DNA of 64,000 bases, taken from assembly GCA_950097015.1 (NCBI GenBank), contig CATNEN010000001.1, positions 18,600,001 to 18,664,000 of the forward strand. Reading direction: 5' to 3'. Both the position numbers and the translations under genes were made by a program. Origin of the DNA: Macrostomum hystrix. Lineage: Eukaryota; Animalia; Platyhelminthes. Shown here piece after piece: positions 13,937 through 64,000 of this stretch; the stretch's first letter is position 1, and every line of letters begins with the position of its first letter. The notes below the pieces were generated by a model, which saw only the letters and a program-made list of their open reading frames with translations, was not told the DNA's origin and did not search any database.

Positions 13937-14082
13937 GCCTAAACTAGTTTCTTGGTCTTTTAGCGAGAGTAAACTTTCCCTACTTAATTTTCCCGGCCCT
14001 TACTTGAATAAGTCGACAACCAGAGAAGGGGTGGGGTGGGCGAGGAAAGAAAATTGTGATTAACCCTAGGTCACGGTGACCC

Positions 14083-16909: not shown

Positions 16910-16911
16910 TT

Positions 16912-34070: not shown

Positions 34071-34269
34071 ATAATAATAATAATAATTGATTACACCTGC
34101 CCCAATTGGGCCAGATGTGCAGCCGACAGCACAGCTGCAGCTATGGCGCGGCGCATCTGAAGGTTGCGTACAGCTGTTCAGTCCATGGACTGGCGGGACG
34201 CCACACCCACCTTTCAAGTATCCCAGCTGATGCTGGTACCCATTTAACAGCTGGTTGAACTGAAGCAAT
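34071..34269 (-). mobile_element. SINE family B, 5'-truncated at the minisatellite
   Basis: Tail (ATA)n on the plus strand plus the family-B body. Confidence 0.75.
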
Positions 34270-34271
34270 TC

Positions 34272-37739: not shown

Positions 37740-37867
37740 GAAATATTCAATACTTTTGTGATGACAATAAATCGCAAAATAATTTCCTGTGTAGTGTGTA
37801 ATGACTCTGAACGGGTTTGGGTGGGACCGATCAAGTGGGGTGGGGAGGGGAGCACACAGACTTTTTA

Positions 37868-37903
37868 TTTCTAGAAGTTTCTAGAAGTTGTTATTTCTAG
37901 AAG
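37868..37903. promoter_or_regulatory. Heat-shock-element-like array upstream of the SET gene
   Basis: tTTCt-aGAAg-tTTCt-aGAAg (four inverted nGAAn units) plus another TTCTAGAA, ~130 bp upstream of ATG 37739. Confidence 0.55.
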
Positions 37904-38565
37904 TCTCTGGGAGCACAGACCAAATGGATAAGATAAGGCAGGCTTTCCTTCTGTCTGTGGTGGGGAGACCAGTCATCAGTTTATCAGTTTTTATTTGAGC
38001 TGCTCCTTCCTCTTTTGGCCGTGCAAGTCCTGTGACCATGCAGAAGAGCTCTACTAGCTAGGCTGCTAGATGTTTACCGTTTCTAGCAGTCACTTCAATT
38101 AATGGGAATTAAGTGATTCTGGAAGCATGCTTGTTGCTAAACACTAAGCTTCTAAGTCAATGAGTACGCGTACAATAAAAGCAATTACGAAGATAATGAC
38201 ACGCTTTCGAATGCCTTATAAAATTAAATTCGATTTAAGAATTTCGTAAAAATGTGCGAAAGAACAAAGTTTTGGCATTAAAGTGTCAACGCGTTCTTCA
38301 GGCAACGGACGGCAAGAAAAATGGACTCCTGTTATCGGAGACCACACACCGCCTCAAATAAACCTTATCGCTTATCATTCCCGATTCCCGGTATTTATTT
38401 TGCTATTCGGCCTTTGCTGCTCAATATCAGTATACAGTTTACAGGGATACAGGGAGTATACAGTTTTTTACATTTGTACATTTTTATGTCTGTAGTCAAA
38501 TTGATGCAAAACATTAACAGTCAAAATTACATTTGCTGACAAGGGTGGAACAGAATGCGATTCCA

Positions 38566-41319: not shown

Positions 41320-41743
41320 TTTGTGAGTAAGTGATGGTTATGAAAGGCTAATAGATGGGATATATTGAAAATAAAATTGCTGTAAATTAACCCGGGAAAA
41401 TAATATTACTAGAGCCTAGAGGTCTGTAAATTACAATTCATTAGTTTACTAAAATTGCTAGTTTACTTGCCTTTGTCGAGACTCGGCTCGAGCCGGCTCG
41501 GCTCGGCTCGCTCTTGGCTCGGATTGGCTCTGTCGGATGCCGCGCGGCGCGGGCAAGTTTTCATTGGCTTGTGTCCAATAAAGCTTTGAGAAGGCGGGGA
41601 CCCACCTGTGGCATATCTGCACGTATGGCTCATATATAAATAGATGATCAATCGTTGTTGAGCAATTTTATAGTTGCAACTTCTCCCACCAGATCACTAA
41701 AATTCCCTCAACTAACTTCCTTCAACCTTCCTTCAACAAAAAA

Positions 41744-42088
41744 ATGAATAGCAACAGCAGCGACAGCAACAGCATCAACAGCAGCCAATGCCATGTCCAT
41801 GGCCTGGATGTTCATGACGATGTCAATGAGTTAAAATTTCATTTGTTCCCGGCACAGTTCCGGGCGAACGTTCTGGCCAATGCCACCACCAAACTGGATG
41901 AGGCCATCCAGTCGTGCCTCGTCGCTGCGGAAGAGATGGCGGCGACAGTGGCCTGGACGCCCGCACGGCGCCGGGCACAGGACGCGCTGAATGAAGCAAC
42001 GCGTCGTGTGAATCTGGCCATGATTCGGATGGCCAGAGCTCGCCGCATAGCGGCGGGCCTGGACCCATATGTGAGTAGTCGCTTTTGA
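41744..42088 (+). CDS. Small helical protein of unknown function, divergent from the transposase (may splice at ~42070)
   Basis: ATG ORF ~100 bp after TATATAAA; GTGAGT donor-like site near its end. Confidence 0.45.
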   Translation: MNSNSSDSNSINSSQCHVHGLDVHDDVNELKFHLFPAQFRANVLANATTKLDEAIQSCLVAAEEMAATVAWTPARRRAQDALNEATRRVNLAMIRMARARRIAAGLDPYVSSRF

Positions 42089-43241
42089 ATATAATTATTA
42101 TTAGAATATTTATTAACGCATCTGATCTGATAACCGAGCTAATAAGCTAAATGAAACTGAAACCCATCTTTTATATCGCAGCCGGGCGTCCTGTGAATCG
42201 CTGCAGGGCAGCAGATCGGCCGGCTGACCGGGACCAGCTGACCAATTTAAGTGGCGATAATTGCACTTATTGACAATAATAATTTATAAATAACTGTATT
42301 AATGTTGTGTTTAATATTTTTGCACAAATACGCACGCGCACATTTTTAGATAAATAAATGTTCAAAAAATACCCATTTACACAAAAAATACACAAGCCAT
42401 AATTTTTCATCGCCGTCTTCAATTTTTTGTGTGCCACTGGCACTGGTTGGTTGGATTTCTGTAGTTGTTGACTTGACAATAAGGAATAGTTTTGTATATA
42501 TACAATACATAGTATTAGTATGTATGTGAAACCTTATTGAGAAATCAAAGGACATCAGGACAATTACACAGTCTGAATCAAGACAGTCTGAATCGGAATC
42601 ATAGTTCTTAATCATAGTCGTACAAATCGTGTATATGAGAGACGGTTACAAGACAGCATACATTGTTGATAACGCATTCCTAATTATTTAGCCATTTAGT
42701 TGAAAAAAACACATGAAAGAAATTAATTCTGTTGTCAGCTTCTGTAGGCTCACCATATACATAGTAGGCGTGTCTAGCAATTCTAGTAATCATGAGTTCT
42801 GAGTTCTGACCGGCAGATTGTAATGATATCATTGCAACGATTGCTAGATAAGCTAGACTATCATGCATATTGTAATATTTGCATCGCAACGGAAAAAAAG
42901 AATCACCATCAACGCTAGTAGATGGTGATCAACGATATTAAACGCAAACTACAGTAAATACCCGGTAAATTACAGATACTTAAGGTAAGTAAATTACAAT
43001 AAATTCAATTACTACAAAAGCTAGTTTGCCTTTGTCGAGTCATTCGCTCGAGCCGTTCGCTATTGGCTCAGCTCGCTCTAACCGGATTGGCTCTGTCGGA
43101 TTCCACGCTTTTGCATTAGCTCTTGTCCAGTAAAGCTTTGAGAAGGCGGGGTCCCAACGGAGCATATCTGCACGTACGTAGCTCGTATATGAATAGTTGA
43201 TCAATCTTTGTTGAGCAACTTTATAGTCTCTAGAAAATTTC

Positions 43242-46200
43242 ACCCGTGTTGACACGGTAGTCAGCCTAAGAAACGATTTCGGAGCATGCACGAGGAGCGC
43301 ATCATAGGCTACTCGGCGCATGCTCCGTGTTCTAAGAGCATGCTCTTTCAGTTTAATTAGGCTCGATAGTCCAATTTAATAGGGAGGATCTACGCTACAC
43401 TGCAGAAATAGACGCTTAGTATTAGTTATATAGCAAGTAGTTATATAGCAATTAGCTATATATAAATGTATTTTTAGTAGTAGTATTTTAATTTGTACAG
43501 TATTTAAATGTGAGAATCTATTCTAAATGCCAAAAAGACTCTTGACAATTCAAGATAGAAGAGAAGCTCTCTACTGCATTATTGTAATCCTTTATGATAT
43601 CTATTTAGGGGTCCAATGGTGCACAATAGAATCGATAATTGGCTTGAACAAAACTGTCAGTTAGTTAATAAAAAGGCTAGAACTAGTTTAGCTGCATGCC
43701 TGTATAGTATTTTTTGAACTAAAATTGCATTCTAGCTGTCTTAAATGGGCAAGTATTAATATTAGGCCTAATATTAGCTAGGCCTATTAGCTTTCTTTTT
43801 GGATTTAGGCCCAATTTAAATTGTTGATGTACCTGATCCCCTAAATTTATAATTACTTCTATGTATTGACTTGTAAATGAATAATTCAGCTAGCTTACTA
43901 TCACATACTAGGCTTATAGCTATAGTCAAAGGCTTAAATAAATAACCATAAATTATTCCAATGCCATTGCAATGTCTATATGCATAAGTAACCAAGGCTT
44001 TTACATATAATTTATTAAATATAAAATCAAATGTCCATAGCTCTATAATCTATATATACAGTCCATTTCATAAGCTAATATAGCCTGCCTGTCTAAGGCA
44101 ATAAATAGGCAGGGGCTAGATAGTAGAGCTTGTAGTAGGCTAGCTGGTAGGGCTAGCTAGTAGGGGCAGGCTGGTAGGGGCTAGATGGTAGAGCTGTTAG
44201 GGGATAGCTAGTAGGGGCTAGATAGTAGAGCTGTTAGGGGATAACTGGTAGTGGCTAGCATAGGCCTAGATAATAGAGTTAGGGGATAGCATAGTTGGTA
44301 AGGCTAGCTAGTAGGGGCAGGCTGGTAGGGGCTAGATGGTAGAGCTGTTAGGGGATAACTGGTAGTGGCTAGCATAGGCCTAGATAATAGAGTTAGGGAA
44401 TAGCATAGTTGGTAGGGATAGCTAGTAGGGGCTAGATGGTAGAGCTGTTAGGGGATAGCTGGTAGCAGCTAGCATAGGCCTAGATAATAGAGTTAGGGGA
44501 TAGCTGGTAGGGCTAGCTAGTAGGGGCAGGCTGGTAGGGGCTAGATGGTAGAGCTGTTAGGGGATAACTGGTAGCCTAGGGGCTAGATAGTAGAGCTGTT
44601 AGGGGATAGCTAGTAGGGGCTAGATAGTAGATCTGTTAGGGGATAACTGGTAGTGGCTAGCATAGGCCTAGATAATAGAGTTAGGGGATAGCATAGTTGG
44701 TAAGGCTAGCTAGTAGGGGCAGGCTGGTAGGGGCTAGATGGTAGAGCTGTTAGGGGATAGCTGGTAGCAGCTAGCATAGGCCTAGATAATAGAGTTAGGG
44801 GATAACTGGTAGGGCTAGCTAGCCAGTAGGGGCAGGCTGGTAGGGGCTAGATGGTAGAGCTGTTAGGGGATAACTGGTAGCCTAGGGGCTAGATAGTAGA
44901 GCTGTTAGGGGATAGCTAGTAGGGGCTAGATAGTAGATCTGTTAGGGGATAACTGGTAGTGGCTAGCATAGGCCTAGATAATAGAGTTAGGGGATAGCAT
45001 AGTTGGTAAGGCTAGCTAGTAGGGGCAGGATGGTAGGGGCTAGATGGTAGAGCTGTTAGGGGATAACTGGTAGTGGCTAGCATAGGCCTAGATAATAGAG
45101 TTAGGGAATAGCATAGTTGGTAGGGATAGCTAGTAGGGGCTAGATGGTAGAGCTGTTAGGGGATAGCTGGTAGCAGCTAGCATAGGCCTAGATAATAGAG
45201 TTAGGGGATAGCTGGTAGGGCTAGCTAGTAGGGGCAGGCTGTTAGGGGCTAGATGGTAGAGCTGTTAGGGGATAACTGGTAGCCTAGGGGCTAGATAGTA
45301 GAGCTGTTAGGGGATAGCTAGTAGGGGCTAGATAGTAGAGCTGTTAGGGGATAGCTAGTAGGGGCTAGATAGTAGAGCTGTTAGGGGATAACTGGTAGTG
45401 GCTAGCATAGGCCTAGATAATAGAGTTAGGGGATAACTGGTAGGGCTAGCTAGCCAGTAGGGGCAGGCTGGTAGGGGCTAGATGGTAGAGCTGTTAGGGG
45501 ATAACTGGTAGCCTAGGGGCTAGATAGTAGAGCTGTTAGGGGATAGCTAGTAGGGGCTAGATAGTAGAGCTGTTAGGGGATAACTGGTAGTGGCTAGCAT
45601 AGGCCTAGATAATAGAGTTAGGGGATAGCATAGTTGGTAGGGCTAGCTAGTAGGGGCTAGATGGTAGAGCTGTTAGGGGATAACTGGTAGTGGCTAGCAT
45701 AGGCCTAGATAATAGAGTTAGGGAATAGCATAGTTGGTAGGGCTAGCTAGTAGGGGCAGGCTGGTAGGGGCTAGATGGTAGAGCTGTTAGGGGATAACTG
45801 GTAGTGGCTAGCATAGGCCTAGATAATAGAGTTAGGGGATAGCATAGTTGGTAGGGCTAGCTAGTAGGGGCAGGCTGGTAGGGGCTAGATGGTAGAGCTG
45901 TTAGGGGATAACTGGTAGTGGCTAGCATAGGCCTAGATAATAGAGTTAGGGGATAGCATAGTTGGTAGGGCTAGCTAGTAGGGGCAGGCTGGTAGGGGCT
46001 AGATGGTAGAGCTGTTAGGGGATAACTGGTAGTGGCTAGCATAGGCCTAGATAATAGAGTTAGGGAATAGCATAGTTGGTAGGGATAGCTAGTAGGGGCT
46101 AGATGGTAGAGCTGTTAGGGGATAGCTGGTAGCAGCTAGCATAGGCCTAGATAATAGAGTTAGGGGATAGCTGTTAGGGGATAACTGGTAGCCTAGGGGC

Positions 46201-47291
46201 TAGATAGTAGAGCTGTTAGGGGATAGCTAGTAGGGGCTAGATAGTAGATCTGTTAGGGGATAACTGGTAGTGGCTAGCATAGGCCTAGATAATAGAGTTA
46301 GGGGATAGCATAGTTGGTAAGGCTAGCTAGTAGGGGCAGGCTGGTAGGGGCTAGATGGTAGAGCTGTTAGGGGATAGCTGGTAGCAGCTAGCATAGGCCT
46401 AGATAATAGAGTTAGGGAATAGCATAGTTGGTAGGGCTAGCTAGTAGGGGCTAGATGGTAGAGCTGTTAGGGGATAGCTGGTAGCAGCTAGCATAGGCCT
46501 AGATAATAGAGTTAGGGGATAACTGGTAGGGCTAGCTAGCCAGTAGGGGCAGGCTGGTAGGGGCTAGATGGTAGAGCTGTTAGGGGATAACTGGTAGCCT
46601 AGGGGCTAGATAGTAGAGCTGTTAGGGGATAGCTAGTAGGGGCTAGATAGTAGAGCTGTTAGGGGATAACTGGTAGTGGCTAGCATAGGCCTAGATAATA
46701 GAGTTAGGGGATAGCATAGTTGGTAGGGCTAGCTAGTAGGGGCAGGCTGGTAGGGGCTAGATAGTAGAGCTGTTAGGTGATAGCTGGTAGGGCTAGTTAG
46801 TAGGGGATAGCTAATAGGGGCTAGCTGGTAGGGGCTAGATAGTAGAGCTGTTAGGGGATAGCTGGAAGGGCTAGCTAGTAGAGGCTAGATGGTAGAGCTG
46901 TTAGGGGCTAGCTGGTAGGGGCTGGAATAAATAAGAGAGTTAGGGGATAGCTGGTTGGGGCTAGGTAGTAGAACTTTTAGGGGATAGCTGGTAGGGCTAC
47001 TTAGTAGGGGATAGCTGGTAGGGGCTAGATAGTAGAGCTGTTAGGGGATAGCTGGTAGGGGCTAGAAAAAAAATAATAGAGTTTGAGGCTAGCTGGTAGG
47101 GGCTAGAAAAGATAATAGAGCTGTTAGGGGATAGCTGGTAAGGCTAGCTAGTAGGGGCTAGCTGATAGGGGCTGGTAGAGGCAAGCTAGTGGGGTTGGTT
47201 GGAGCTAGCTTGTAGGGCTGGCAGGGCAGGTTGGGGTTGGGGCTAGCTGGCAGGCTGGTTGGGGCTAGATGGTAGGGCTTGTTGGGGCAGG
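43242..47291 (+). repeat. Left TIR: ~860 bp unique sequence plus a G-rich CTAG/TTAGGGG satellite
   Basis: Reverse complement of 58676-61320; the outer part is near-identical and the satellite differs in unit number and order. Confidence 0.92.
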
Positions 47292-47666
47292 CTGGTAGGT
47301 GCTAGCAGTATGTGCTGGCTAGTAGGGGCAAGCTGGTAGGGCTGGTAGCTCATAAGGGCTACTGATAAGGTTAGCTGGTAGGGTCTAGCAGGTAGAGCTT
47401 GCTGGCAGGGGCTTGCTCTAGCTGTCAGGGGCTAACTGAAATATGGCAAGAGATGCTATGAACCTAAGTATGAACCTAACTATGAACCTATGAACCTAAC
47501 CTAAGCTAGTGGGAACATAAATGGGTTTGGCAAGAACACGGGATGTGGCAGATCGCTGGAGTGAAAATAGTTTTGCGGAAATTTAGCATCTTTGTTTTTT
47601 TACGTCTAGATCTATTTGTGTATTTATAAATTCATTCGTTGTACTTTTACGCTTCTTTCAGCAAAT

Positions 47667-49765
47667 ATGCGCTGGCGAAAGGCATCGGCTTGGAACATTT
47701 TTGTTTCCAGGCGCTATAAGCTTATGTCAGGATCATTTGCTGGTTGGTATTTGCTTAAATTTGTTTCAACTTTTTATGCAGTTATTTTGTAGACCGTTCT
47801 TGTGCACTGGCGCCCAAACTCAATTGCTCATGCTCTGTGTAAAGTATGAAGTCCGCTCGAGAGTAGTTTAGTGTGGTGCGAAGAATCGTAAGGCCCCAGC
47901 TGGCCAAGCTTGCGACTTTTTATTTTAGCAAACCGTGGGGTGGTGCAACTATCGATTGGCATATCGATGTTCATATCGCGTGCATTGGCCCAACCAATTA
48001 TCTGCCTGCGATATGTACATCGATATGCCAATCGATAGTTGCACCACCCCACGGTTTGCTCAAATAAAAAGTCGCAAGCTTGGCCAGCTGGGGCCTTACG
48101 ATTCTTCGCACCACACTAAACTACTCTCGAGCGGACTTCATACTTTACACTCTGCAAACGTGCATCGCTGTTTATATATTAAGTATTGAAATACCAATAG
48201 TGTACGCTCGTACAAAATGCACCCTGTGCCTAGACAAAATTTTAGGTAATCGGCAAATGTAAATTTCGAAGCACCTGGAGGCCTTTACATTTCGCTCACA
48301 TTTAAACACTTCCATTAAAAAAACAATTTTAGTTCGAATTCAAGCGCTCCGAAAGGCTTTCCGCGCCTTGAGCAAGACACAGCTAGCTGATCTACGTAGG
48401 GAAGTTGCTTTAAGGAATCTGCAGTGTACTGCCGAGAAAAGTTCCGCGCGAATTAAAGCATATGCCGAAAAATTAGTACGCAGCAGGCAAAATTTTGTCG
48501 GGTATTAGCTCTATACCTGTCACCTTAATCTCTGCCAAAGAGGTTATTTTTTCGTTTTTTTGTTGCAGATGCAAACTTGTGAGACTGCTAATGTTTCTGT
48601 GGCTATTTGCCTTGGCCTGCCGAGCGGTGACTTTCACGTCTTCGAAACGACGAATGTTTTTGGAAGCGTAAAAAAATCCGGCCTGCACAATGTAAGCAAC
48701 AGGGTTAGCTCGGATCTTGATTATATTTTTGTTAAAACTTTATTATCACAAAATTCAAATTCACTGCAATTTAATTCTGTCTATTGCACTCGTAGCTAAT
48801 GTCTGAGGAGAGCAGCCACACTAGAAAACAGTCCGTCGCTGATCTCCGTCGGAAAGTTGGAAAGTTTTTGGTGCAAAAATTCTGTGAGTATATTTCTGTT
48901 AAGTAAACGGACCTTTTGACCAAATTAACGAACTTGTTTAAATATTTGGCAATCTTGTAGGCTTGCAATTCAATGAAGTAGATCCTTTAAGCGTCGTCTG
49001 GCATTCAATTTTTTTATTGCATTCAACGGTTTATTTTAGTTAGTTGCTCATGCTTACCGCTATTTTCGATTAAAGCGCTAGCTTCTCCAACTCCAAACTG
49101 TCCTGAAACAAATAGCCTTACATTAAGGATTAAGGATTAAGGATTATAATAACAATTGCTTCTGATACCACTGGCGTTTCTCTTCTAATCACCAATTTTT
49201 AGTTGCTGCTGGTGGCTCTGGACGGTTGCAGTATAAGAAGTACTGCAAGAATTGGCTTCACTGGCCAGCTGGGGTGCCAGCAGACCAACCACCAAAAATG
49301 CTTAAGGCGGAACATCTAAACACATTGTGGGCTAATAGAGATACCATTTGCTTCTCTATTAGCCCCATTGTCGAGGATTTATCGCGTATCTCAAACGGCC
49401 AGGTTGCTGCAGACCAGAGCATCGTCGGTCAGAGCATCGCTGACCAGAGCATCGTCGGTCAGAGCATCGCTGGCCAGAGCATCGCCGGTCAGAGCATCGC
49501 TAGCCAGAGCATCGCTGGTCAGAGCATCGTCGGTCAGAGCATCGCTGGCCAGAGCATCGCCGGTCAGAGCATCGCTGGCCAGAGCATCGCCGGTCAGAGC
49601 ATCGCTGGCCAGAGCATCGCCGGTCAGAGCATCGCTGACCAGAGCAGCGGCATTCGAATCATTCGAGTTATCAACGGGCAAGCCACCTGTGCCACCTCTG
49701 TGGCGAGTCAAATTGTTCGAGTCGTCGGAACCAACAATGCAGTCCGTGATCTGTTTCAGTTATGA
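47667..49765 (+). CDS. HMG-box-like protein, 330 aa (exons 47667-47742, 48333-48475, 48569-48691, 48796-48883, 49203-49765), second gene of the KDZ element
   Basis: Four GT-AG introns with matching phases (1, 0, 0, 1). N-terminus RKASAWNIFVSRRY...RIQALRKAFRALSKTQLADLRREVA resembles HMG-box helices; later HWPAGVP motif and (SIAGQ)n repeat. Confidence 0.68.
47838..48149. mobile_element. 312-bp MITE with ~140-bp TIRs, TGT...ACA ends and 5-bp TSD CTCTG
   Basis: Almost perfect hairpin; CTCTG at 47833-47837 and 48150-48154; lies in intron 1 of the HMG-like gene. Confidence 0.88.
49414..49646 (+). repeat. 15-bp coding tandem repeat (CAGAGCATCGCTGGC), about 15 units encoding QSIAG
   Basis: In frame within the last exon of the HMG-like gene. 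Confidence 0.9.
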
Positions 49766-52700
49766 CTTATGACTCATCAATTTTGCTCAAACCAAGCGGT
49801 AATCAGCCAGCCCGCTAAGACTGAGAGATGTCCACCAGGTGATTGTTGAAGCCTCGACGGCCAGTTCCGGCAAACTTAAAACGGAACATTATGTGCAATC
49901 TCGAATTAGCTATGATGGAAACTTATCACGGATAAAGCATATTGTATTAAATACAATCTCCAGCATACAAGCGCGCGAAAAAAATATTTTTTTCCTGTGT
50001 TGTGCATTTAACTGAATTAAAACATTTATTTTGCTCAAATTTGCATTTTTCTTTGATGATGCAGATTGCTATGTCTCAATTGCTTAAACGGCTGCTAAAA
50101 CCAGTGATACCGTTTATTTTACTTTTTATCATAAATGAAAGTTTCACAGCTTTTTTAATACAAAGTTACGAGCGTAATTCTGTTCGATTAAATATTTTTT
50201 TGCCAAAAAAATGACTTAAAAAGCAACAAAGTGCATACGTAGCCTCGCGCCACTTCATTAAATACAATAAGTATTGTACGCATGTTTTGCGATTCTAGCA
50301 CATTTGAAGGGTCGTAATTTTCAATATTACGAGCGTATTTATTACTTTGGTGCTTCATTTCGTCTCAAATGGCAAGGTGCATTCGGCCTGAACTTGCGAT
50401 TGTATCTACCTTGATTGGGATTGCGATTGAGTTTGCCTCGGAGTCGGGTAAACGACTGCAGAATGAAGCTGGCAATTTCAAGCAATGATGCAATGATGCT
50501 CATGGAAAGCCAGAGTTCATGGCAATGGCCTAATTGAAACTCGCGGCTACTGTGTCTATGGCTGCATGAGTGTTGTGTCGTTGCTGTTGGATGCTGAAAC
50601 TCATGGTCGCAAAAAAGGCGGCGTATCAAACGACTCGGCAACGACGCCTTAGCGTAATCTTCTGAGCTTCTTAAGATTTTAGGCGCGCCATTACAGAGAG
50701 CGCCGGATCCAAGATGGCTGACAGGTCAATGTCAGCGCCGCTGCCCTCTCTATTTCATTGGCCCTCGGGAGCGTGCTCAGCGCTGGATTTGACACGAAAC
50801 AGATGGATTAGTCTGCTGTCTGCTAACGGGGTGATATTTTTTACCCCTTCCTATGAAAGGTGTTTACGGACCCGGAGGGGTCTAATTGCTAGCTTAATTT
50901 ACTAAAGCCAAAATATGCAAAACAGGGGAGGGAAATAGGAGAGGGCGAGTCGAGTGAGAGGTGCGAATCGCAGGTCAGACGGGCGGTAGGCGCAGCCAGG
51001 AAAGGAGAGGCGATTCAGCGGGGAATTATAGGTGGCTTGACCCTGGGTCAGTTCGGGTCGAAAAAAGTAGACACTGACCCACGCCCAGACCACACGTACG
51101 CATCATGACAAAGAATCATTTGCGTACGCCCGCACGTGTGATGTGCCGGCTGACGAGACAGTGAAATTCAGTATTTAGTACATTCAGTATATATTCTCGA
51201 ACGACCGTGTCTGACAGGACACGTGCATTGTACTGAACTGCTCCTAATCGATCTACTCCACCTCTGATGTATGGTACCTGTTGGTGTGCCTGAGTGGCCA
51301 AGATCCCAGGGACCAGGGTTGTGAGAGGTAAGAACTGCTAGGCAGGGCTGCCACCAGCCACCTACAGGACACTACAATTGACTGGCCCTACCGAAACGCG
51401 GCTGTCGCTCTGTTCAGAGAAGTACTTTAGGTAGTATGGCCGAAGATAGTAGGGATTCTCAGGGAATAGATTGGTCAGCAAGAGAGGACTTTTGCATAGG
51501 GGATTCTTAGGGATGCAGCACTAGACATGCAGTGGGCACTACCCAAGGTAGAGTGTGTCCGATGGGAAACAGTCAGCGCACTTCTTATCCATTAATGGTG
51601 TGCTTCAATGCATGCGTTCTCGTGCATGTGCAGTCCCTAACTATTCCTATAATAGTATACGTTAGGATTACATTGGGCGCTTGGATGAAGGGTCTATGAC
51701 TTTGCTAGCAGGAAAATGCTAGCCGAATTTTGCTAGCAGGAATATTGGCTAGTGAGGTTTTTGCTAGCCAAACTTTGCTGGCAGAGATTTTGTTCGCGGA
51801 TTTTTACGTGATGATCACAGAATGCAGGCATGCGTAAGCGTATATTTGGCGCGAAACCTCTGAATAAGTCGTACATGCACAGTGAGCATGCAGTGGAACG
51901 TTTACATGTACTCCATATCATCTTAACAAAAACGTGTATTGCCTTGCGTTGTCTTTATGAACGTACACATTTACGTTTATCGTCAAATACGCAAAGAATT
52001 CAGACATTTCGGTTTTTTAGAGTTGCAGCCACTGTTGCCGTGTCACAGTGTACGCGCGATCGCGTGTCCAGTAATGTATCCATAAAGTAGTGTTTCTGCA
52101 CTTTGCACCCCTAGCTTCTCTCTCTGCGCATGTTAGCTTAATTGTCTCGTTACGATTGACTAAGCTAATGGAACTGACACTTTTTATGGTGTTGAACGAT
52201 CTTAAAATTCGAAATTTCATAATTAATTAGCCTGCATCCTAGCTCGGAAAATTTATGATTTTCCCACATAAGTTTGAACAGACTTGCAGGTATGGAGATG
52301 TCGAAATGACAGACAGAGTAATTAAAAAATTAGCACGATCAACTTCACTTGGAGACTAGCATAACGTTAGCTGCAGAGTTGGTATTTGTAATTGTAATTT
52401 CTATCAAGTGGACAATACGATTCAGATAGTAGTGGGAAAAAAAGAAAGTGGGACCCGCGGCTACTTGATGAGACTGTTGCCAAGCGATTAAAACCTTGTT
52501 TAAAAAAGAGCAGCTAATTGCTGGAAGCATGGCTTACAGGGTGACTGCGCTCTTAACATTTTTTCTTCCTCATTTATAAAAACATCCGATATTTCTTAAC
52601 TTTCCTCTGATTTTCCAGACCCGAATCTTTGTACTCGTATATTTCTTGATACATGGATTAGATCATGTATTGCAGATAAAGTTTTACGTTTCACTAGTTT

Positions 52701-53522
52701 CACTATACACGCAACTTGAGCAAGTGAATATTATTGTACTGAGTGGTTGATTTTAATCATTCCTAACTTTCATATTTTCTATATTTCATCGCACAAATAA
52801 ATAAACTCACTATAATCGTATAGTGAGTTATATGAGTTATATATATATATACTTGTTATATATTTTGTCCCTTTCTTAAGAACAGAAAATCAGCGACTCT
52901 TTTTGAGTGCGCTAATACTGCTGCTAATTAAAACCGTGTATTGGTATTAGTTGCTTCTTGCAGCAGGACAATTAATACCATGTACTTCGTGACGTTTGTC
53001 GTTAACATTTCAGAAACTTGCAGCTTTTAAATGATTGTCATAGACTGTCTCGAAGATTATACGAGATTATGCTGCTCGTACTGCGCAAATGCAAAATTAA
53101 AAAAGCGGTAGCCAGCTCTCCTCACTCGACATAGATACATGCATGCGTAGAAAGCACACAAGCGATTAGTTATCCTCTTTTGATAATAGAAGACATAATA
53201 CGGAAGACATTAAATCTCGGCTTGATGTTAATTTTAAATATTAATGTAAAACATTAAATAATTTCGCTTTCAGCGTATAAACTAGAATTTTTTCTTGGCA
53301 GCTCTGTTCAATAATTTTTATAATAGGTTAGCTTTTACAGGATGTTGAGTTTATTTAAAAATAAAATGTATTTATAATAACATAATGCCTTCAATCGAGT
53401 GGGAAAACAAAAAACTGGGTGTAGCAGAGTTTTAAAATGTTATACGTTCAAGACCGGGCTAAAGGATCAGAAGATTAACAAAGTTTTAAAAAATAATATC
53501 TGATTTCAGAATATCATGATTC

Positions 53523-56500
53523 TTAATCATCCTCGGCATCAGAGGTCTCGGTATCTTCTTCATCATCGGAAGACTCGGTAATCTCAGCTTCTTGGTCGAT
53601 CAGATCCACCTCATTGGGTGGCACTGCTCCAGCGTTACCTAAGTGTTAAGAATTCGCTATATATATTCTGTGATCTTAAAAGTAACCTAAATTATAAAAC
53701 CGAAACTATACCACAAAGCTTACAGGCCGCTGAGAGAAATCGAGAGAAGATATCTTCCGACGGGAAAATACTGATATGCTGTTTTAAAAGTTGTTCAATT
53801 CCATTGGCCCTGAGAACTCTTAAAGTCAGCAGGGGACGATGAGCATTGATCTCAACTTCTGATCTCGTGCGCAGGAGTGCATCAACAAAAAAGCGAGATG
53901 CCCGCCGAACCTCCTCTTGAACCAAAGAAGATTCCTCTTCGATTCTTCTTTGAAGCTGCAGCAACTTAACTGCTTGACGTTTCCTTGCGATATCCACCAT
54001 TGAAGTGTCACCATTATCAGTTGCCAGAATGCTGTTGAAATTCAAAGTACAGCCTGGCGGACAACTTGCGTTGTACCGTTCAAGAAGTACATTAGCCCTT
54101 GCAGATATTTTGCTGAGTCGTTTGTTAAGGACTCGATTGAACTTTTGACCACTTTCTCTAGCTGCCCGACAAATTAAAAATTCTCGCTCGCAAGCCAACT
54201 CTTGAAGTTCGAGAATCGTCTGGTCTGTGTGGTCCGTCCTGGCATTCTCCTTAACAGATTGCTCGATAAGTTCATTTTCCCAGACTTTGGCCAACGCTAG
54301 GAAGGTTTCAACGTCACCTAAAAATTAAATAACAGGGATTAATTTTGTCAGATTAATAACGTATTCTAATTAGTAAAGTGCGGTCAGAAAGCCCGAGGCT
54401 TTTAAGTCATATTTCAAGGTTGTGCTTTGATTAAATTGCGCCTTTGCTTTAATTATGAACTTCAATTACGCAAATTTATATCTAATTGGTTTTAAAATTT
54501 TTAATTATTACATAAAAACGTATACTAATAACCCACAGTTCATTTCGGTCAAAACGCAAAACTGTCGAACATCAGAATTGAAACGCTGCCAAGCTCGCTT
54601 CTCAACAAGCCGTCGTCCAAACAACCAGGAGCCTAAGTAATTTTAAAGTAAACATCTTGCTTCGGAAAATATAAAGTTCACTTCCTTGCAATAAAAAACT
54701 GTAAGTAAATGACTCACTAATAGTTCGAATTTTCTCGAAGTTGACCGAATCCGCCCAGTAGTTCAGGAACTCGCGGCGATTTGGATGAGTCATTTCTTTC
54801 AATTGCGGACCAAAGCGTCTAGCAGAAGACCATATGCGCTCACAGCTCTCACCGTCAGTCAAACCTGCGCCATTTACGGATCGAATTCCGAATTTCGTAT
54901 GGCAGCTTTCCTTGTGACCGTATGCATGGAAAGCCGGAATGGCGAAGGACAGCCTGTCATCATTGAAATGACTGGCCAGCTTGCAGCTGATGTCGTACGA
55001 CACGACCAATTTCTGATGGCTCGGAATGTCTGCCAACGCTTTCGATACCATTGCTTGGGAATACGCGAGCCTAAATTGAGGCAGGTTTTCAACTACATTG
55101 TAATTAGTTTTTAATGAGTTAAAATTAACTAAGTATTATTTTTAAGAAGGGGTTGTAGACTAGTGGTTAGAGCGTCGGACTCACGACTTGAAGGTCGGGG
55201 GTTCGATTCCCGACTCCACCGGTACAAGTTGTTTCCTTTAGCAAGCCATTTAATTCTGCCCTGCTTCAGTTCATCCAGCTGTAAAATCGGTACCAGCATT
55301 AGCTGGGGTAATTGAAGGTGGGTGTGGTGGTCCTTAATTCCGTGGACTAAACAGCCCTACGCAGCCTTCAGATGCGGCTGCGCTGTTAGCTGCACATCTG
55401 GCCCAGTTTGTGCAGGCATTATTAACTATGTATTCTTATTTTAATTAATACTAACATATTAATTATTATTTTTTCTGAAGAGAAAAAAACGAAAAGAAAG
55501 GAAGAAAAAGAAGAAATAAAAGATGAAATCAGAAAGGAGGACTGTACAAGATATTCGTGCATACCGGGCAAGATATTCGGATTATTAATTTTGAGTATAC
55601 AGTCGCCAGGCTACAAGTTTAGACCTTAAAATTATAGAGTTAGGCAGGGCGCAAAAGCTTAGTAATGATACATAACGAATGAGCTTAAATACGTTCGTAG
55701 CTGCAACATGTATAAAAGGTACACAGATTTCTCTGTGGCAAGGCGCACCTTTCTCCTGGTGTAACGATGTCGGCCAGATATGTTACGCTAGAATGGCGGC
55801 AGGAGCCACAGAAAAGGCCAAAAACATCGAGTTTGTTTTTGTCGGATGCAGTAACGAGCCCTTTGCCCCGACCACCGGCTGTCCAATTAGGGCAGTGATT
55901 TCGGTTTTGCCCAGCTGGTCTGCTGAAATCGACATCGACGAAAAAACCGGACGCAAGCGGAATCGCCGCTTTTCCAGCACGTTTTCGATGTCTTATGCCG
56001 AAGCAGCCGTCCAGCATAAGAAAAGTCGGTGTCGAGACTTGAGTTTCGGGCATCAGCGTGTTATCATCGGGATTGGGTCCTTGCGAGCTTTCACTTCGAG
56101 TGCTCGGAGTGGGATCCTAATCATTAAAGGAATCAAAATAACTTATTTACGCTTGAAAGCCGATGTACGAACACTTGCTTTGAGCTTAAGATGGCAGAAA
56201 TAGTTTCACGTCACTGACGAAATGCATTACCAACTTACAAAAAAACATGCTGGACACGATGTCTTCTGTCCCCACCGAATGTCTTGCAAAAGTCGCCGAA
56301 ATGCTCGAAAGCTTCCAGTGGTGTTCAATGTACGAAAAAGATTGATCTGCGCAATCGTTACAGCAAAAATGGAATAAAGACGGCTAATTTTTGTACAGAA
56401 GGAAGTTTCAGTTTTATTTACGATAGCTAGATCTGCTCGAGCCTTCAGTTACCTTCGTTGGCGGAGATAGCCAAGCGGAGCTTCTGCAATTTTTCCATGC

Positions 56501-58181
56501 AGCACAGAGTGATGATAACGATGCTGTACAACTTGATGATACGCAATCGAAGAACAGCAACAAGTTGATGTGGACAGCGATAACCTCCTTGACAGTTTCG
56601 GTCAGAGGTTGCGTCGGCCAGAAGCCATGCGACAGTAGCGTGTTCCGCAATGTTAAGCACGAGCAAGACTCCACTTGCAGGGTCAATTGACCTACAATGT
56701 TGGCAAGGGCATCAATATTTAGACAGAAGTCTTAAGAATAGCGTTAACAAATACTTAAAAATGGCCTAATTGTCTATCTGACATCAACTGTCACTTTACC
56801 TTCATCTGTTAATGCAGTCACAACTTGCGTGCTGATATCATCGCAGACACAAGTGGTTCTTCGAACCAAAAGTATTGGCGTCGAGACCACCATGTAAGTT
56901 GTACCCTGAAAAGAACATGAAGAAATCGAAATAAAGGATGGGTCGCATTATTAAGCTTGAAGTGCAAGTTTGATCTTAATTGCAATCTCGGCTCTGTAAA
57001 ATGCAATCCTTAAGTTTGACTTAGGGATACGCTAGCTTTATATAACGTGCCGAGAAATCAGTAACGTGACATTATGAAAACGCTAAATATAAAAAACAGC
57101 AAAACAGCACAGAACTTACATCCCATATCTTCACAACATGGGGTGGACTGTGTGAGTGAGCGATATTGAGACAGTGCTCACACACTTGTAGTAGGTGACA
57201 GCTCTCGCACCTAAACTCTCCAACCAAAGCTTTACAAAGCGAGCACAGGTTATTTACTTCATTTCGAAAAAACGAGGCAAATCCATCTGCCAGCTCTGTG
57301 GCTAGACTTTTCCAGCCGTCCTCCTCAAGCTCACGCCGAGTGTCATATCGACTTGGCCCACCATCGGCCTCTTCTGCAGGTGGCTCATAGTCATCATGAT
57401 CCACATTTTCATCGATGTAGTCACTGCCAACAGCCGCAACAGTGACGCCAGTAACAGTCAGAAAACTAAAATTGCGTCGAAGAAGCTTAATAAACAAAAA
57501 ACTTTACACATTGCAAAGGTTCTTGCTGAGAAAAAATCGCATGCAAAGATTTCAGATCAAGGCTGACAAGTTTCGTTTTTGTTCTGCAAAAGAAACAAGC
57601 CTTAAAACGCTATCCGATTTTTGGGCTATCTATACAGTACAAGCCTATACTGCATTTGCCAAGTTTACAGCAAATTAGCAAGACTAAAACTAAACTAAGC
57701 TATTAAAAATTACCACAAATTCCATATAAAAAGTTTTTATATGAATATCTGGGGAATCTCAAAAACTTCTAAGAATTCTTCTGGTTCAAAATCGTCGCCT
57801 TCCTCGATAGCACTAGGCGTGGGTGCATTTATTGACTTCATGTCAATATCGCTAAAATTGTGGAGGAATTAAATTACTTTATTCAATTGAATTCTAAACA
57901 ATACATTATTTTAGTCAAGAGTAGTAAGATGAGCACAACAGATAAATTCATTTAAAAATTACTCATTCGACTAAATCCTGTGTTTTGAAAAACTAAATAT
58001 TTGATAACGAAATAAAAGAGTTTACATCTCTTCGAGATGAAAAATGTAAAAACACGAAATTTCTAAGACTCAAAACAAACCTTTTTACTGCAGGATGTTC
58101 GATTTTTTCACGAACTTTTCTTCGCTTTAACGCATGAAATATGACTTCCTTACTGGTACTGACTAGATATTTTTTTGACAT
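53523..58181 (-). CDS. KDZ transposase with N-terminal Cys-cluster (CxC-like) domain, about 10 exons, apparently intact
   Basis: CSLC...CESC...CEHC...H...H; LLSHGFWPTQP; SCPAC; LDGCF; GLFCGSCRH; GER|LAY; YDISC; IPAFHAYGH..C; GAGLTDGESCERIWS; acidic tail ending at TAA 53523. The junctions checked keep frame; the 5' exon(s) are less certain. Confidence 0.9.
55149..55422 (+). mobile_element. Full-length tRNA-derived SINE (family B) in a KDZ transposase intron
   Basis: A box (TAGACTAGTGG), B box (GGTTCGATTCC), conserved body, ATT tail. Confidence 0.85.
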
Positions 58182-58354
58182 TGCAATTAATCTGAAAAGC
58201 AGTGTAAAGTGATGTAAATAAACGTTCAATTAGACAATCAATATTACTATCGAAATCATTTTATAGTATTTAATAATTAGTAAGTAATAGTAATTGGTAA
58301 TGTAAGGAACTAAATTACTCCTGCCTCCACATTCCCGTATCCCATATCCAGCCA

Positions 58355-61320
58355 GAAACAGCTAGCGCCACCAGCTAGCACTACCAGCTAGCCCTACCAG
58401 CTATCTCCTAACCGCTCTATTATCTAGCCCCGTCCTAGCAACCATCCAGCCCTACAAGCTAGCCCCTACCAGCCCTACAAGCTAGCCCATACCAGCCCTA
58501 CAAGCTCAACCAGCTAGCCCCTACTAACTAGCCCTACCAGCTATCACCTAACAGCTCTACTATCTAGCCCCTACCAGCTATCCCATACTAACTAGCCCTA
58601 CCAGCTATCCCCTACTAACTAGCCCTACCAGCTATCCCCTACTAACTAGCCCTACCAGCTATCCCCTACTAACTAGCCCCTGCCCCAACAAGCCCTACCA
58701 TCTAGCCCCAACCAGCCTGCCAGCTAGCCCCAACCCCAACCTGCCCTGCCAGCCCTACAAGCTAGCTCCAACCAACCCCACTAGCTTGCCTCTACCAGCC
58801 CCTATCAGCTAGCCCCTACTAGCTAGCCTTACCAGCTATCCCCTAACAGCTCTATTATCTTTTCTAGCCCCTACCAGCTAGCCTCAAACTCTATTATTTT
58901 TATTCTAGCCACTACCAGTTATCCCCTAACAGCTCTACTATCTAGCCCCTACTAGCTATCCCCTAACAGCTCTACTATCTAGCCCCTAGGCTACCAGTTA
59001 TCCCCTAACAGCTCTACCATCTAGCCCCTACCAGCCTGCCCCTACTAGCTAGCCCTACCAGCTATCCCCTAACTCTATTATCTAGGCCTATGCTAGCCAC
59101 TACCAGTTATCCCCTAACAGCTCTACCATCTAGCCCCTACTAGCTAGCCCTACCAACTATGCTATCCCCTAACTCTATTATCTAGGCCTATGCTAGCCAC
59201 TACCAGTTATCCCCTAACAGCTCTACTATCTAGCCCCTACTAGCTATCCCCTAACAGCTCTACTATCTAGCCCCTAGGCTACCAGTTATCCCCTAACAGC
59301 TCTACCATCTAGCCCCTACCAGCCTGCCCCTACTGGCTAGCTAGCCCTACCAGTTATCCCCTAACTCTATTATCTAGGCCTATGCTAGCTGCTACCAGCT
59401 ATCCCCTAACAGCTCTACCATCTAGCCCCTACTAGCTAGCCCTACCAACTATGCTATTCCCTAACTCTATTATCTAGGCCTATGCTAGCCACTACCAGTT
59501 ATCCCCTAACAGCTCTACCATCTAGCCCCTACCAGCCTGCCCCTACTAGCTAGCCTTACCAACTATGCTATCCCCTAACTCTATTATCTAGGCCTATGCT
59601 AGCCACTACCAGTTATCCCCTAACAGCTCTACTATCTAGCCCCTACTAGCTATCCCCTAACAGCTCTACTATCTAGCCCCTAGGCTACCAGTTATCCCCT
59701 AACAGCTCTACCATCTAGCCCCTACCAGCCTGCCCCTACTAGCTAGCCCTACCAGCTATCCCCTAACTCTATTATCTAGGCCTATGCTAGCTGCTACCAG
59801 CTATCCCCTAACAGCTCTACCATCTAGCCCCTACCAGCCTGCCCCTACTAGCTAGCCTTACCAACTATGCTATCCCCTAACTCTATTATCTAGGCCTATG
59901 CTAGCCACTACCAGTTATCCCCTAACAGATCTACTATCTAGCCCCTACTAGCTATCCCCTAACAGCTCTACTATCTAGCCCCTAGGCTACCAGTTATCCC
60001 CTAACAGCTCTACCATCTAGCCCCTACCAGCCTGCCCCTACTAGCTAGCCCTACCAGCTATCCCCTAACTCTATTATCTAGGCCTATGCTAGCTGCTACC
60101 AGCTATCCCCTAACAGCTCTACCATCTAGCCCCTACTAGCTATCCCTACCAACTATGCTATTCCCTAACTCTATTATCTAGGCCTATGCTAGCCACTACC
60201 AGTTATCCCCTAACAGCTCTACCATCTAGCCCCTACCAGCCTGCCCCTACTAGCTAGCCTTACCAACTATGCTATCCCCTAACTCTATTATCTAGGCCTA
60301 TGCTAGCCACTACCAGTTATCCCCTAACAGCTCTACTATCTAGCCCCTACTAGCTATCCCCTAACAGCTCTACCATCTAGCCCCTACCAGCCTGCCCCTA
60401 CTAGCTAGCCCTACCAGCTAGCCTACTACAAGCTCTACTATCTAGCCCCTGCCTATTTATTGCCTTAGACAGGCAGGCTATATTAGCTTATGAAATGGAC
60501 TGTATATATAGATTATAGAGCTATGGACATTTGATTTTATATTTAATAAATTATATGTAAAAGCCTTGGTTACTTATGCATATAGACATTGCAATGGCAT
60601 TGGAATAATTTATGGTTATTTATTTAAGCCTTTGACTATAGCTATAAGCCTAGTATGTGATAGTAAGCTAGCTGAATTATTCATTTACAAGTCAATACAT
60701 AGAAGTAATTATAAATTTAGGGGATCAGGTACATCAACAATTTAAATTGGGCCTAAATCCAAAAAGAAAGCTAATAGGCCTAGCTAATATTAGGCCTAAT
60801 ATTAATACTTGCCCATTTAAGACAGCTAGAAATACAATTTTAGTTCAAAAAATACTATACAGGCATGCAGCTAAACTAGTTCTAGCCTTTTTATTAACTA
60901 ACTGACAGTTTTGTTCAAGCCAATTATCGATTCTATTGTGCACCATTGGACCACTAAATAGATATCATAAAGGATTACAATAATGCAGTAGAGAGCTTCT
61001 CTTCTATCTTGAATTGTCAAGAGTCTTTTTGGCATTTAGAATAGATTCTCACATTTAAATACTGTACAAATTAAAATACTACTACTAAAAATACATTTAT
61101 ATATAGCTAATTGCTATATAACTACTTGCTATATAACTAATACTAAGCGTCTATTTCTGCAGTGTAGCGTAGATCCTCCCTATTAAATTGGACTATCGAG
61201 CCTAATTAAACTGAAAGAGCATGCTCTTAGAACACGGAGCATGCGCCGAGTAGCCTATGATGCGCTCCTCGTGCATGCTCCGAAATCGTTTCTTAGGCTG
61301 ACTACCGTGTCAACACGGGT
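58355..61320 (-). repeat. Right TIR with C-rich satellite
   Basis: Mirror image of the left arm. Confidence 0.92.
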
Positions 61321-61381
61321 GAAAATTTCTAGCTACTTAGTCACTCAAATTCTTATTTTGAAGCTATTATAAAAGCTTAAA

Positions 61382-61759
61382 ATGCAGTCCAATCGCTATA
61401 TTGTAATTTTCTCTAATAATGGTGAAATTTTAGAAGTAGATGAGACAGAGATTATGCTTGAAGAATACCAGGATTTTGACTGGGCCAGCATGGAGCCTTC
61501 GAAACTGTACTCAGCTACGAGAATTGAGGTGAGGGCAGAGTACAGTGGCGAATGGTATGACGCCGTTCTCCTCCAGGTGGTCACTGACCCAGAAGTGGAC
61601 AGCACGCCAACCGTCCTTCACCTGCGGAGAATGCGCACCATCAAGAAGAAAAGTGTGGACTCGCTGCTGAAGGCCGTTTGTCGGGTGAATGCCGGGCGCC
61701 ACCGAAGCCGATTGGGAGCCATTCAGGTAGGACACTACAACTTTTACTATAACAGATAG
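61382..61759 (+). CDS. Probable first exon of a gene with a Tudor/SH3-like N-terminus (candidate EnSpm accessory ORF)
   Basis: YIVIF...VRAEYSGEWYDAVLLQV; CAG|GTAGGA donor at ~61726; lies just downstream of the second promoter copy once the KDZ insertion is removed. Confidence 0.45.
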   Translation: MQSNRYIVIFSNNGEILEVDETEIMLEEYQDFDWASMEPSKLYSATRIEVRAEYSGEWYDAVLLQVVTDPEVDSTPTVLHLRRMRTIKKKSVDSLLKAVCRVNAGRHRSRLGAIQVGHYNFYYNR

Positions 61760-62566
61760 TCTGTTAATAAACAGCAGACATTTATATTAATTATCCAAGT
61801 AGACTCACTGCTTAAACCATTCACAGATCAAAGCCGCACTCATTCATTTGCTCACAGACTCACTGATTTCTGTGATTCATTTACAGACGCTCTCATTTAT
61901 TCATTTACTGACTCTGGTTCATTCACGAACAGACTTTATCCACACAAATTGAGTTTTTCAATAAGCAGAATAGCTGCCTGTGATGGCCTGGGCTGCAGAC
62001 CCTCAGTCTGCACGCCTGGCCGGGAACTTTGACTGCACAAAACTAACTGTGTCCTGTCTGCTTGCACTCAGTATGGGGGCCACTGACTGACTCATGGGCG
62101 CTGTACGCTTCTCAACTCACTGCGCACCGAGTTTCCCGTTGTACGTTCACATGCCTTCCCCTGCCACCTAACGGCCGTGGACTAGCCGGCCCCAGCTCAC
62201 GGTAAAAATTAGACGGCTAGCCCAGGTCACCTCACCGTGCCATGAGTCCGGCTAGACGAGTGCAGCTCATGAGCTCCCTGTGGGAACGTGAAGCGTGGGA
62301 ACCCCATGATGAAGCGTGGTTGGCTGGGAGGGGTTGTTTACGCGAACTTGGGAACGAACTAGACGATGGTGCCATACATCCCTATTTGAGCGGGGGACAA
62401 AGGGGAACGAGCTGTTTTTCCTCTTCCCACCAAAACTCGAATAGTAAAGAGCTCGTCGAGTCAAAACTTCAAATCTAATTCTATATACTATACTAGCTAG
62501 AATTGTTAAATAGAAACCTTTTTTATTAGCTCAAATAAGAACTGACAGGTAAGCCAAGTTTAGGTG

Positions 62567-62998
62567 CCCATGTCGGTTTAATATTTTCCTATTTGTAATA
62601 ATGTATTGTAAGAGTTTGTGGCATGTCAAAATCAATCCATATTTGTTATTTGACCCATGTCAGTTTAATATTTTCGTATTTGTAATAATGTATTGTAAGA
62701 GTTTGTGGCATGTCAAAATCAATCCATATTTGTTATTTGACCCATGTCGGTTTAATATTTTCGTATTTGTAATAATGTATTGTAAGAGTTTGTGGCATGT
62801 CAAAATCAATCCATATTTGTTATTTGACCCATGTCGGTTAAATATATTTTCCTATTTGTAATAATGTATTGTAAGAGTTTGTGGCATGTCAAAATCAATC
62901 CATATTTGTTATTTGACCCATGTCAGTTTAATATTTTCGTATTTGTAATAATGTATTGTAAGAGTTTGTGGCATGTCAAAATCAATCCATATTTGTTA
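62567..62998. repeat. 87-bp tandem repeat, about 5 copies
   Basis: CCCATGTCGGTTTAATATTTTC...ATTTGTTATTTGA repeated almost perfectly. Confidence 0.95.
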
Positions 62999-64000
62999 CT
63001 GCTGTATAATAATCTACATAGTTGGAAATTGCTGGTATTATAAATATTACTATCAATATTTATAGTAGTAATAGCTCATTAATGCTGCCTGCTAAACAAG
63101 CTTTTCATGCAGATCTAAACAGTGGCATACATTGCATAGAAATCCATTCCAGGGGTCATTACTGTCTCGGGTGTCACGGCAAGCTCATGCTGATAATTTT
63201 CGCTAATTTTTGGTGCTCAGAATTCTGTTGAGTAATTGTAATGGGGCTCCAACCCCTCAGCCACATAGATCGTCACAGCGTCACCTATCCTATATGCAGA
63301 GGATAGGCCACCCTCTCCCATTCAAATGCACGCTCTCCTATTTCCCCTGTGTTAGGCAGATTTCTGGTAACCCATACTACTAGTGTTCGGCTACTAGTAG
63401 CTAGTATGACCCCCTCGCCTACGCCATTCAGATCAAGGTGTCAAATCTTAGATAGTCCAACTCTTAATCACCCACACTGCACCCACACCTGCAGCCCGGA
63501 GAAATATGTAACATGCCCTGTGGCCTGTGACTATGACCTGTTAAGAGTGCCTTCAAGGAAGTGAATATTTCAGTCAAACCAATACAGAAAAGTTGCGACA
63601 CAGACTACTAGATGAGGAGTAGTATCAACTGTTAGCCGTTCTTACTCTGCATCTGGCGCAGGAGAAAAGGGGAATGACGGAGAGATCGGGAGAGAGAGCA
63701 GATGAAAAAAGCACTGTGGAAAGCGGCAGAATTTGAATGTAATTGAAAGTTAGAAACAGGAACAGCCTCTATTTGTCAAAGTCAGTGTGTTAAATATAAG
63801 GAAAATGCCTGACCATAGCGGGCATGTCTCCTCGAGGCTGATGTAGAGAGGAGAATCTGAGAATCACATGGAATCGAGTCCTCGTTTAATTATTGTTATT
63901 AGCATGTAGCATTAATAGAATGGGACCATATAGGGCCAAAACACCTGTTTATAAAAAATGAGGGCCATTGCATTTGAATTCACATTGAACTGTAACTTTC

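Follow-up and report, generated by a model that had tools for sequence, protein, structure and literature searches.

A complete KDZ-class DNA transposon with kilobase satellite arms and a putative partner gene in the flatworm Macrostomum hystrix

Canonical Zisupton transposases contain CxC4 and SWIM domains together with the KDZ domain, and the fish Zisupton elements were reportedly described by Bohne in 2012. Zisupton and Dileera elements generate 8-bp target-site duplications, and the Agaricomycete KDZ lineage Kyakuja shows 7-bp duplications and CA..TG tips, possesses no terminal inverted repeats (TIRs) and often carries a TET/JBP gene (Kojima, 2025; PMC12730594). The Cryptococcus elements KDZ1-3 are 9-11 kb in size with 8-bp duplications and extra open reading frames (ORFs) of unknown function; KDZ1 has TIRs of 236 bp and KDZ mobility was experimentally shown in Cryptococcus (bioRxiv 10.1101/2024.08.15.608186). 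Here, we describe a KDZ element of the flatworm Macrostomum hystrix, which is located in a stretch of 64,000 nucleotides (assembly GCA_950097015.1, contig CATNEN010000001.1, positions 18,600,001 to 18,664,000), referred to as the window in the following. The whole element covers window positions 43241-61321 (18,081 bp) and is a complete cut-and-paste transposon of the already known KDZ class: its transposase matches the Pfam KDZ family PF18758 above the cut-off, and defined ends and target duplications are found in several copies. It is a well-preserved and probably still active member of unusual build, in that an element from an animal lineage unites a 7-bp duplication with satellite arms of kilobase length and a conserved partner gene. 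We consider it very probable that it is an autonomous transposon, moving by the mechanism outlined below.

The left terminus is located at 43241 (CACCCGTG...) and the right terminus at 61321 (...CACGGGTG), and these tips are identical in all five genomic copies. All ten arm ends in the genome start with CACCCGTGTTGACACGG, the leading C being a base of the element. The initial annotation of this DNA, made from the sequence alone, had proposed exact termini at 43242 and 61320; the ends are indeed exact and lie one base further out on each side. The direct repeat that it had taken as target duplication was confirmed and is 7 bp in length, AAAATTT, directly flanking both ends. Its left copy (43234-43240) has a single occurrence in eight uninterrupted paralogues of the repeat that hosts the element, and the right copy (61322-61328) was read at the end of the element and in the empty sites. 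A self-comparison of window 42000-62500 gave hundreds of inverted matches, the longest of which (100% and 99% complementary) are located at both ends of the element. The inverted homology extends over 43241-47291 and 58679-61321, in agreement with the TIRs of ~4.0 and ~2.6 kb suggested before, and the identity between the left and right arm is 99.75% over the outer 1,582 nt (3 mismatches, 1 gap). Including the satellite to its end, the arms measure ~4.2 kb (left) and ~3.0 kb (right), and they enclose a core of 10.9 kb. Each arm begins with an outer non-repetitive part, on the left at 43241-44110 (870 bp, plus strand), which contains short palindromes such as GAGCATGCTC and is 99-100% identical across all ten arms, and on the right as its mirror image at 60452-61321 (minus strand).

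The genome was searched in one assembly of 220 Mb in 42 contigs, and the outer 859 nt are present at five places only, each time as a facing pair. Besides the window copy (18.1 kb, AAAATTT) there are four further copies spread over three contigs, each with its own perfect 7-bp duplication. These are the full-length copies c2 at C1:10.14 Mb (16.6 kb, GTTTAAT) and c3 at C8:3.84 Mb (19.4 kb, AAATTTT), copy c4 at C1:11.09 Mb (21.1 kb, GTTTAAA), and copy c5 at C41:2.83 Mb (9.3 kb, GCTATGC), which is rearranged, i.e., deleted and partly inverted. An eighth matching base was ruled out at all five copies, and the targets are mostly AT-rich and often near-palindromic. The unique cores of the copies share 99.5-99.85% mutual identity, which bears out the earlier assignment as a young element. 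Copy c4 has lost the equivalent of window 47618-51452 including the partner gene, and its transposase frame is still open. In eight uninterrupted copies of the host repeat, the sequences that match the two flanks of the window element are contiguous and overlap by exactly 7 bases every time (for example C1:16221759-16222158 with 16222152-16222551). As these eight paralogous empty sites show the 7-base overlap of the flanks, insertion with a 7-bp duplication is proven. The check for copies with paired arms, own duplications and empty sites, which the initial annotation had put forward, thus came out in its favor. At least five insertions of the family are recent, and each of them duplicated 7 bp of target sequence, which is mostly rich in A and T.

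The transposase gene is encoded on the minus strand at 53297-58192. Three public RNA runs of one study (X2-X4) hold about 40% of the core words, and their contigs were placed on 52341-58340. These contigs skip nine stretches, all of which are GT..AG introns on the minus strand after allowed shifts, and the joints coincide with splice candidates predicted beforehand by homology to a Macrostomum lignano protein. The ten exons are located at 58192 (at least) to 58081, 57465-57120, 56905-56800, 56691-56453, 56346-56239, 56116-55749, 55070-54718, 54632-54537, 54317-53724, and 53638-53297, where the RNA contigs end. The coding sequence runs from the ATG at 58181 to the stop codon at 53525-53523 and encodes 808 amino acids; the continuity of the reading frame across the joined exons was checked by script, and the frame is open in the window copy. 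A spliced transposase with no stop at the junctions had been predicted from the sequence, together with the KDZ core motifs, and both are found: CPAC, DGCF, YDISC, FHAYGH, and GLTDGESCERIWS are all present on the minus strand. Pfam searches were run exon by exon on long open stretches with cut-offs of 26.6 bits for KDZ and 26.9 bits for CxC1. PF18758 is matched at positions 3-103 by exon 6 (stretch 55688-56116) with 27.2 bits and at positions 102-215 by exon 7 (stretch 54605-55135) with 91 bits, which supports the proposed KDZ identity. No match to SWIM or CxC4 was obtained on any long open stretch of the transposase gene, exon by exon, or in the M. lignano relatives. Of the columns in which at least 90% of the 10-18 KDZ relatives compared agree, all are kept except for a single one, where Q is replaced by H; among the retained residues are the D of DGCF, YD, FHxYxH and GLxDGExxERxW (conserved D, D, H, C, and E). 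Compared with the window, c2 and c4 show substitutions only and are open in frame, c3 carries a 5-bp deletion in exon 1 that shifts the frame, and the gene of c5 is broken by the rearrangement. In a further run, X1, which has a different organism label and a share of 0.05, a contig joins 54148 to 54349 and skips 200 bases with the non-canonical boundaries CC..GT. This joint coincides with no intron; it could stem from a deletion variant, or the contig could be chimeric.

The closest protein matches of the transposase exon are from M. lignano with 73% identity, followed by echinoderm, amphioxus, fish, mollusc, cnidarian, and sponge proteins. KDZ transposases had been regarded in the initial annotation as known mainly from fungi and as fish Zisupton; this does not hold, as KDZ proteins are widespread in animals from echinoderms to sponges. 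KDZ proteins are common in animals, so the animal host alone is not novel, and the literature likewise reports them as common there (PMC9297572). In a maximum-likelihood tree of exon 7, all Macrostomum sequences, from the window genome and from M. lignano, form one clade (98/100), and a separate clade (98/100) contains the other animals (fish, echinoderm, mollusc, and cnidarian) and the Pucciniales (Puccinia/Melampsora), Tilletia, and Calocera, these three being the fungal groups in the tree. The window genome encodes many KDZ families; the window family is sister to two of them, and M. lignano PAA55188 joins these three. Another family, L043 (G000:C9:692575-692943), is nearly identical to M. 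lignano PAA89046 in the exon-7 part with branch lengths of 0.02, unlike the window family, for which the best match in M. lignano reaches only ~75% identity. The closeness of L043 and PAA89046 could reflect very close species, uneven survival of families or transfer between species.

The second gene, termed the partner gene here, is located at 47667-49765 on the plus strand, convergent (tail to tail) with the transposase gene. The two convergent genes of the initial annotation are thereby recovered, the transposase by RNA contigs and the second gene by conservation. GT..AG sites permit one open five-exon path from a start at 47667, and the exons are predicted from these sites and from conservation at about 47667-47762, 48272/81-48475/501, 48509/41-48691, 48796-48883, and 49203-49765. 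Homologues of the conserved part of the last exon occur elsewhere in the genome with 31-58% identity. Thirteen of them follow a KDZ transposase exon at a distance of 4-8 kb downstream and are encoded on the strand opposite to it. These 13 other KDZ loci fall into ten identity groups, and their transposase exon is 48-76% identical to that of the window. Sister-family elements are located around C41:1.28 Mb, C1:3.56 Mb, C1:17.54 Mb, and C7:4.06 Mb, and some sister-family elements have open partner frames of 348-404 amino acids. In the sister family L063/L064, whose transposase exon is 71% identical to that of the window, three partner exons show 47-55% protein identity while the introns are not alignable, and two more exons are similar by eye. 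Given this pattern of conservation, the partner gene is real and part of the element type, and it accompanies the transposase in many KDZ families of the genome. The last exon contains an in-frame 15-bp tandem repeat of QSIAG units (49415-49646, plus strand), the copy number of which varies between copies; L063/L064 have a different low-complexity repeat at this position.

The domain encoded by the partner gene was searched for in several ways. In Pfam, no match was found on any exon-sized partner stretch of the window or of L063, even at E 10. A search for homologous proteins with the conserved part of the last exon gave no usable match, and its length window may exclude the full protein. No match was found for the partner protein in the ESM Atlas, nor for a profile of four partner homologues against the PDB sequences, nor with hhalign against the amphioxus KDZ-GTF2I-chromo fusion P0209. 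AlphaFold on the alignment of the last exon reached a pLDDT (predicted local distance difference test) of 43.7. By eye, the end of exon 4 together with exon 5 resembles a GTF2I repeat, and exon 1 with exon 2 an HMG box; these are leads only. An assignment as GTF2I-repeat or HMG-box protein is not supported by Pfam run exon by exon, a search in which the candidate domain is split by intron 4. Pfam GTF2I (PF02946) had no match in the whole genome in six frames. In the Branchiostoma lanceolatum KDZ protein P0209 (1082 amino acids), the KDZ core is followed by a GTF2I-like repeat, which is significant in Pfam with 31.5 bits, and by a chromodomain. P0209 independently connects GTF2I repeats with KDZ transposases, and since it joins both, the GTF2I lead for the partner is worth keeping.

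The genome also contains a family of elements resembling miniature inverted-repeat transposable elements (MITEs) of ~437-447 bp that are 90-98% alike (L012-L021; e.g., G000:C3:13826274 and G000:C8:143391). They start with the same 14 nt as the element and resemble it over about 120 nt of subterminal motifs (72% identity), and the satellite is absent. Their other tip, CAGCCGTG, is imperfect. Six of ten MITE copies are complete; of these, three are flanked by a perfect 7-bp duplication, two by one that is offset by a single base, and one lacks it. The KDZ transposase of the window or a sister KDZ transposase may mobilize these MITEs.

The preferred reading is that of an autonomous transposon moved by its own enzyme. 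The transposase is predicted to consist of a B-box-like finger, a CxC zinc cluster and a KDZ core of the RNase-H/DDE type. It would recognize the CACCCGTGTTGACA tips (14 nt) and nearby palindromes, both of which are common to the ~440-bp MITEs, excise the element and re-insert it via a 7-bp staggered cut. The partner protein may act as DNA-binding helper, and the polar TAGGGG arrays would most likely serve as multiple binding sites or landing pads that pair both ends. The arrays would grow and shrink by slippage or unequal exchange.

The satellite-filled arms, as they were called in the initial annotation, consist of a G-rich array at 44111-47440 (plus strand) with 111 TAGGGG on the left and its mirror image at 58350-60451 (minus strand), C-rich on the plus strand with 66 CCCCTA, on the right. 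Each of the two motifs occurs once in the 10.9-kb core. The sub-units of the satellite measure 14, 23, and 37 nt, its higher-order units 114, 228, and about 300-400 nt. It is strongly strand-polar, the GC skew being +0.5 in the left array and -0.5 in the right one. The main rival to the idea that the arrays are bound states that they are selfish filler that expanded inside ordinary TIRs and plays no part in transposition, with only the outer few hundred bases being of relevance. In line with this, the arrays differ in length between and within copies (about 1.6 to 6.7 kb; arms about 2.5 to 7.6 kb) with no visible effect; this variation of the arms is due to expansion and contraction of the satellite. 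Moreover, the MITEs, sharing only the first ~120 nt and lacking the satellite, have 7-bp duplications nevertheless. However, all five copies keep arrays in both arms with strictly mirrored polarity, and the satellite occurs almost nowhere else in the genome search (122 of 124 matches lie inside the five copies, the other two being weak and at one locus). In addition, subterminal arrays are binding sites in other transposon classes (En/Spm, Ac, and Foldback), which argues against filler by analogy. Filler is a possible explanation, which we hold to be somewhat less probable than functional arrays.

A second alternative is that the family is mobile and the window copy a passenger, its own transposase being impaired or silent and the copy being moved by the enzyme of a sister copy. 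This bears on the earlier suggestion of a possibly active element, which is supported by the near-identical cores, by spliced mRNA in three runs and by the open frame of 808 amino acids, with RNA letters that match the sister copies. At 53474, 54141, and 58129-30, the RNA contigs carry C, G, and GG, which are the letters of c2-c4 and not those of the window, and one RNA run carries the c2/c5 letter at 57419. The RNA contigs carry differing sister-copy letters, which shows transcription of the family, with more than one copy as the probable source. Furthermore, the window copy shows three private amino-acid changes (L18, F632, and N779). On the other side, the frame of the window copy has no interruption and none of the highly conserved core residues is lost, and contigs drop rare variants, so that missing window letters do not mean silence. 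A passenger role of the window copy is considered possible, but less likely than not.

Several of these observations weigh against the autonomous transposon favored here. The RNA contigs differ from the window at four places where they carry sister-copy letters, so transcription is demonstrated for the family and not for the window copy specifically, and the three private amino-acid changes are to be counted here as well. The CxC1 domain (PF18802) scores 24.9 bits (E 2.3e-5) on exon 4 alone (56417-56731), just below its cut-off, and may reach into exon 3. The partner exon junctions are predicted from GT..AG sites and conservation, and the partner domain is not recognizable by Pfam, PDB profile, hhalign, AlphaFold or the ESM Atlas. 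The roles of the partner protein and of the satellite are ones that we infer, and in the one assembly available no transposition event or excision footprint was directly seen. A more far-reaching proposal is that the Macrostomum KDZ elements form a separate two-component branch, still active, in which transposition would need both the transposase and the partner, the latter reading the TAGGGG arrays to pair the ends; we regard this as speculative, with a rather small chance of being correct.

A composite like FB-NOF of Drosophila, in which two independent foldback elements flank a captured gene pair and the arms are the mobile unit, might be suggested by the modular tandem arrays of variable length, as in Foldback. 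It was rejected, as copies consisting of arms only or of a solo arm are absent genome-wide: the outer 859 nt occur at the five elements only and the satellite almost only there. In addition, the partner gene recurs in other KDZ families and the tips and the 7-bp duplication recur in the MITEs, and such a composite is thus very improbable. Finally, long inverted repeats and satellites are prone to misassembly, but an assembly artefact or a segmental duplication was rejected as practically negligible given five copies on three contigs with unrelated flanks and five different duplications, eight empty sites and independent RNA runs that match the core.

The element harbors further repeats. Intron 1 of the partner gene contains a nested palindromic MITE-like dispersed repeat of 314 bp (47837-48150) with two inverted halves of ~150 bp, which recurs, with 82-98% identity, at more than 25 further loci; the homologous L063 intron does not have it. 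The intergenic spacer (49766-53296) contains older dispersed-repeat fragments at about 51253-51600 and 51840-52320. A dispersed repeat resembling a short interspersed nuclear element (SINE) is located in transposase intron 6 (55141-55540); as RNA-contig depth over it is high (hundreds to thousands) and its flanks are diverse, with many loose ends, the repeat is transcribed from many other loci. Copy c4 carries a nested insertion of 2.07 kb (G000:C1:11095312-11097386) between the equivalents of window 51650 and 51647, with an A-rich tail at its end and a helicase-like open stretch inside. The element itself sits in another young repeat (window 34000-43240 and 61322-64000) with at least eight further copies at 92-100% identity. 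A SET-domain ORF on the minus strand (36264-36878; Pfam SET, E 1e-12) and a weak DUF4218-like ORF (38566-39675) are located upstream, and the host repeat is probably another large cargo-carrying transposon. Window 2000-22000 has a G+C content of 51-59%, with a dip to 46% at 12-13 kb, compared with about 40% in the rest of the window.

We know of no KDZ transposase that has been studied biochemically, and, as far as the literature found goes, KDZ mobility has so far been proven only in Cryptococcus. The family described here provides the parts for a transposition assay: its ends are exact, its target duplication is known and empty sites exist, its transposase gene is open and expressed, and both natural deletion derivatives and related MITEs are available. 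It raises the question of what role a conserved second gene and kilobase satellite arms play in a cut-and-paste element. The signature of 7-bp duplications and CA..TG tips, described for Kyakuja, is present in an animal lineage, which bears on the subdivision of the KDZ class. If the two-component proposal is true, an active family would be available in a flatworm genus amenable to laboratory culture and transgenesis. The literature search yielded no description of a KDZ element with kilobase foldback-like satellite arms, of a conserved partner gene of animal KDZ elements or of a Macrostomum KDZ element, in accordance with the initial annotation, which knew of no description of this architecture.

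The element can be compared with several known systems. PIF/Harbinger (with a Myb-like ORF), En/Spm (with TnpA and TnpD) and MuDR encode a transposase together with a second element-encoded protein and possess subterminal repeat arrays. The window element resembles them in its second gene and subterminal arrays; the proteins are unrelated, however, and the partner is a putative second component, its role being derived from inference. Foldback (FB) elements of Drosophila and Galileo-like elements have kilobase arms of short tandem repeats, the number of which varies between copies and arms. The long inverted tandem-repeat arms of variable length of the window element are similar in architecture only, as the Foldback transposases belong to other superfamilies, and arms-only copies are common there, whereas none exists for the window element. 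With Zisupton, Dileera, and the Cryptococcus KDZ elements, it shares a large multi-exon KDZ transposase, a big element size, extra ORFs, TIRs and target duplications. In contrast to the 8-bp duplications and short TIRs of Zisupton and Dileera, the duplication is 7 bp in all copies here, and in contrast to Zisupton, the flatworm sequences form their own exon-7 clade (98/100) apart from the clade that holds the fish proteins. The end signature of the window element matches Kyakuja rather than Zisupton or Dileera, a likeness that concerns the ends. Like Kyakuja, the window element combines a KDZ transposase with a 7-bp duplication, found in five of five copies, and with 5'-CA...TG-3' tips. It differs from these fungal families, which are TIR-less and often have TET/JBP, in possessing TIRs of 3-4 kb and a different partner in place of TET/JBP.

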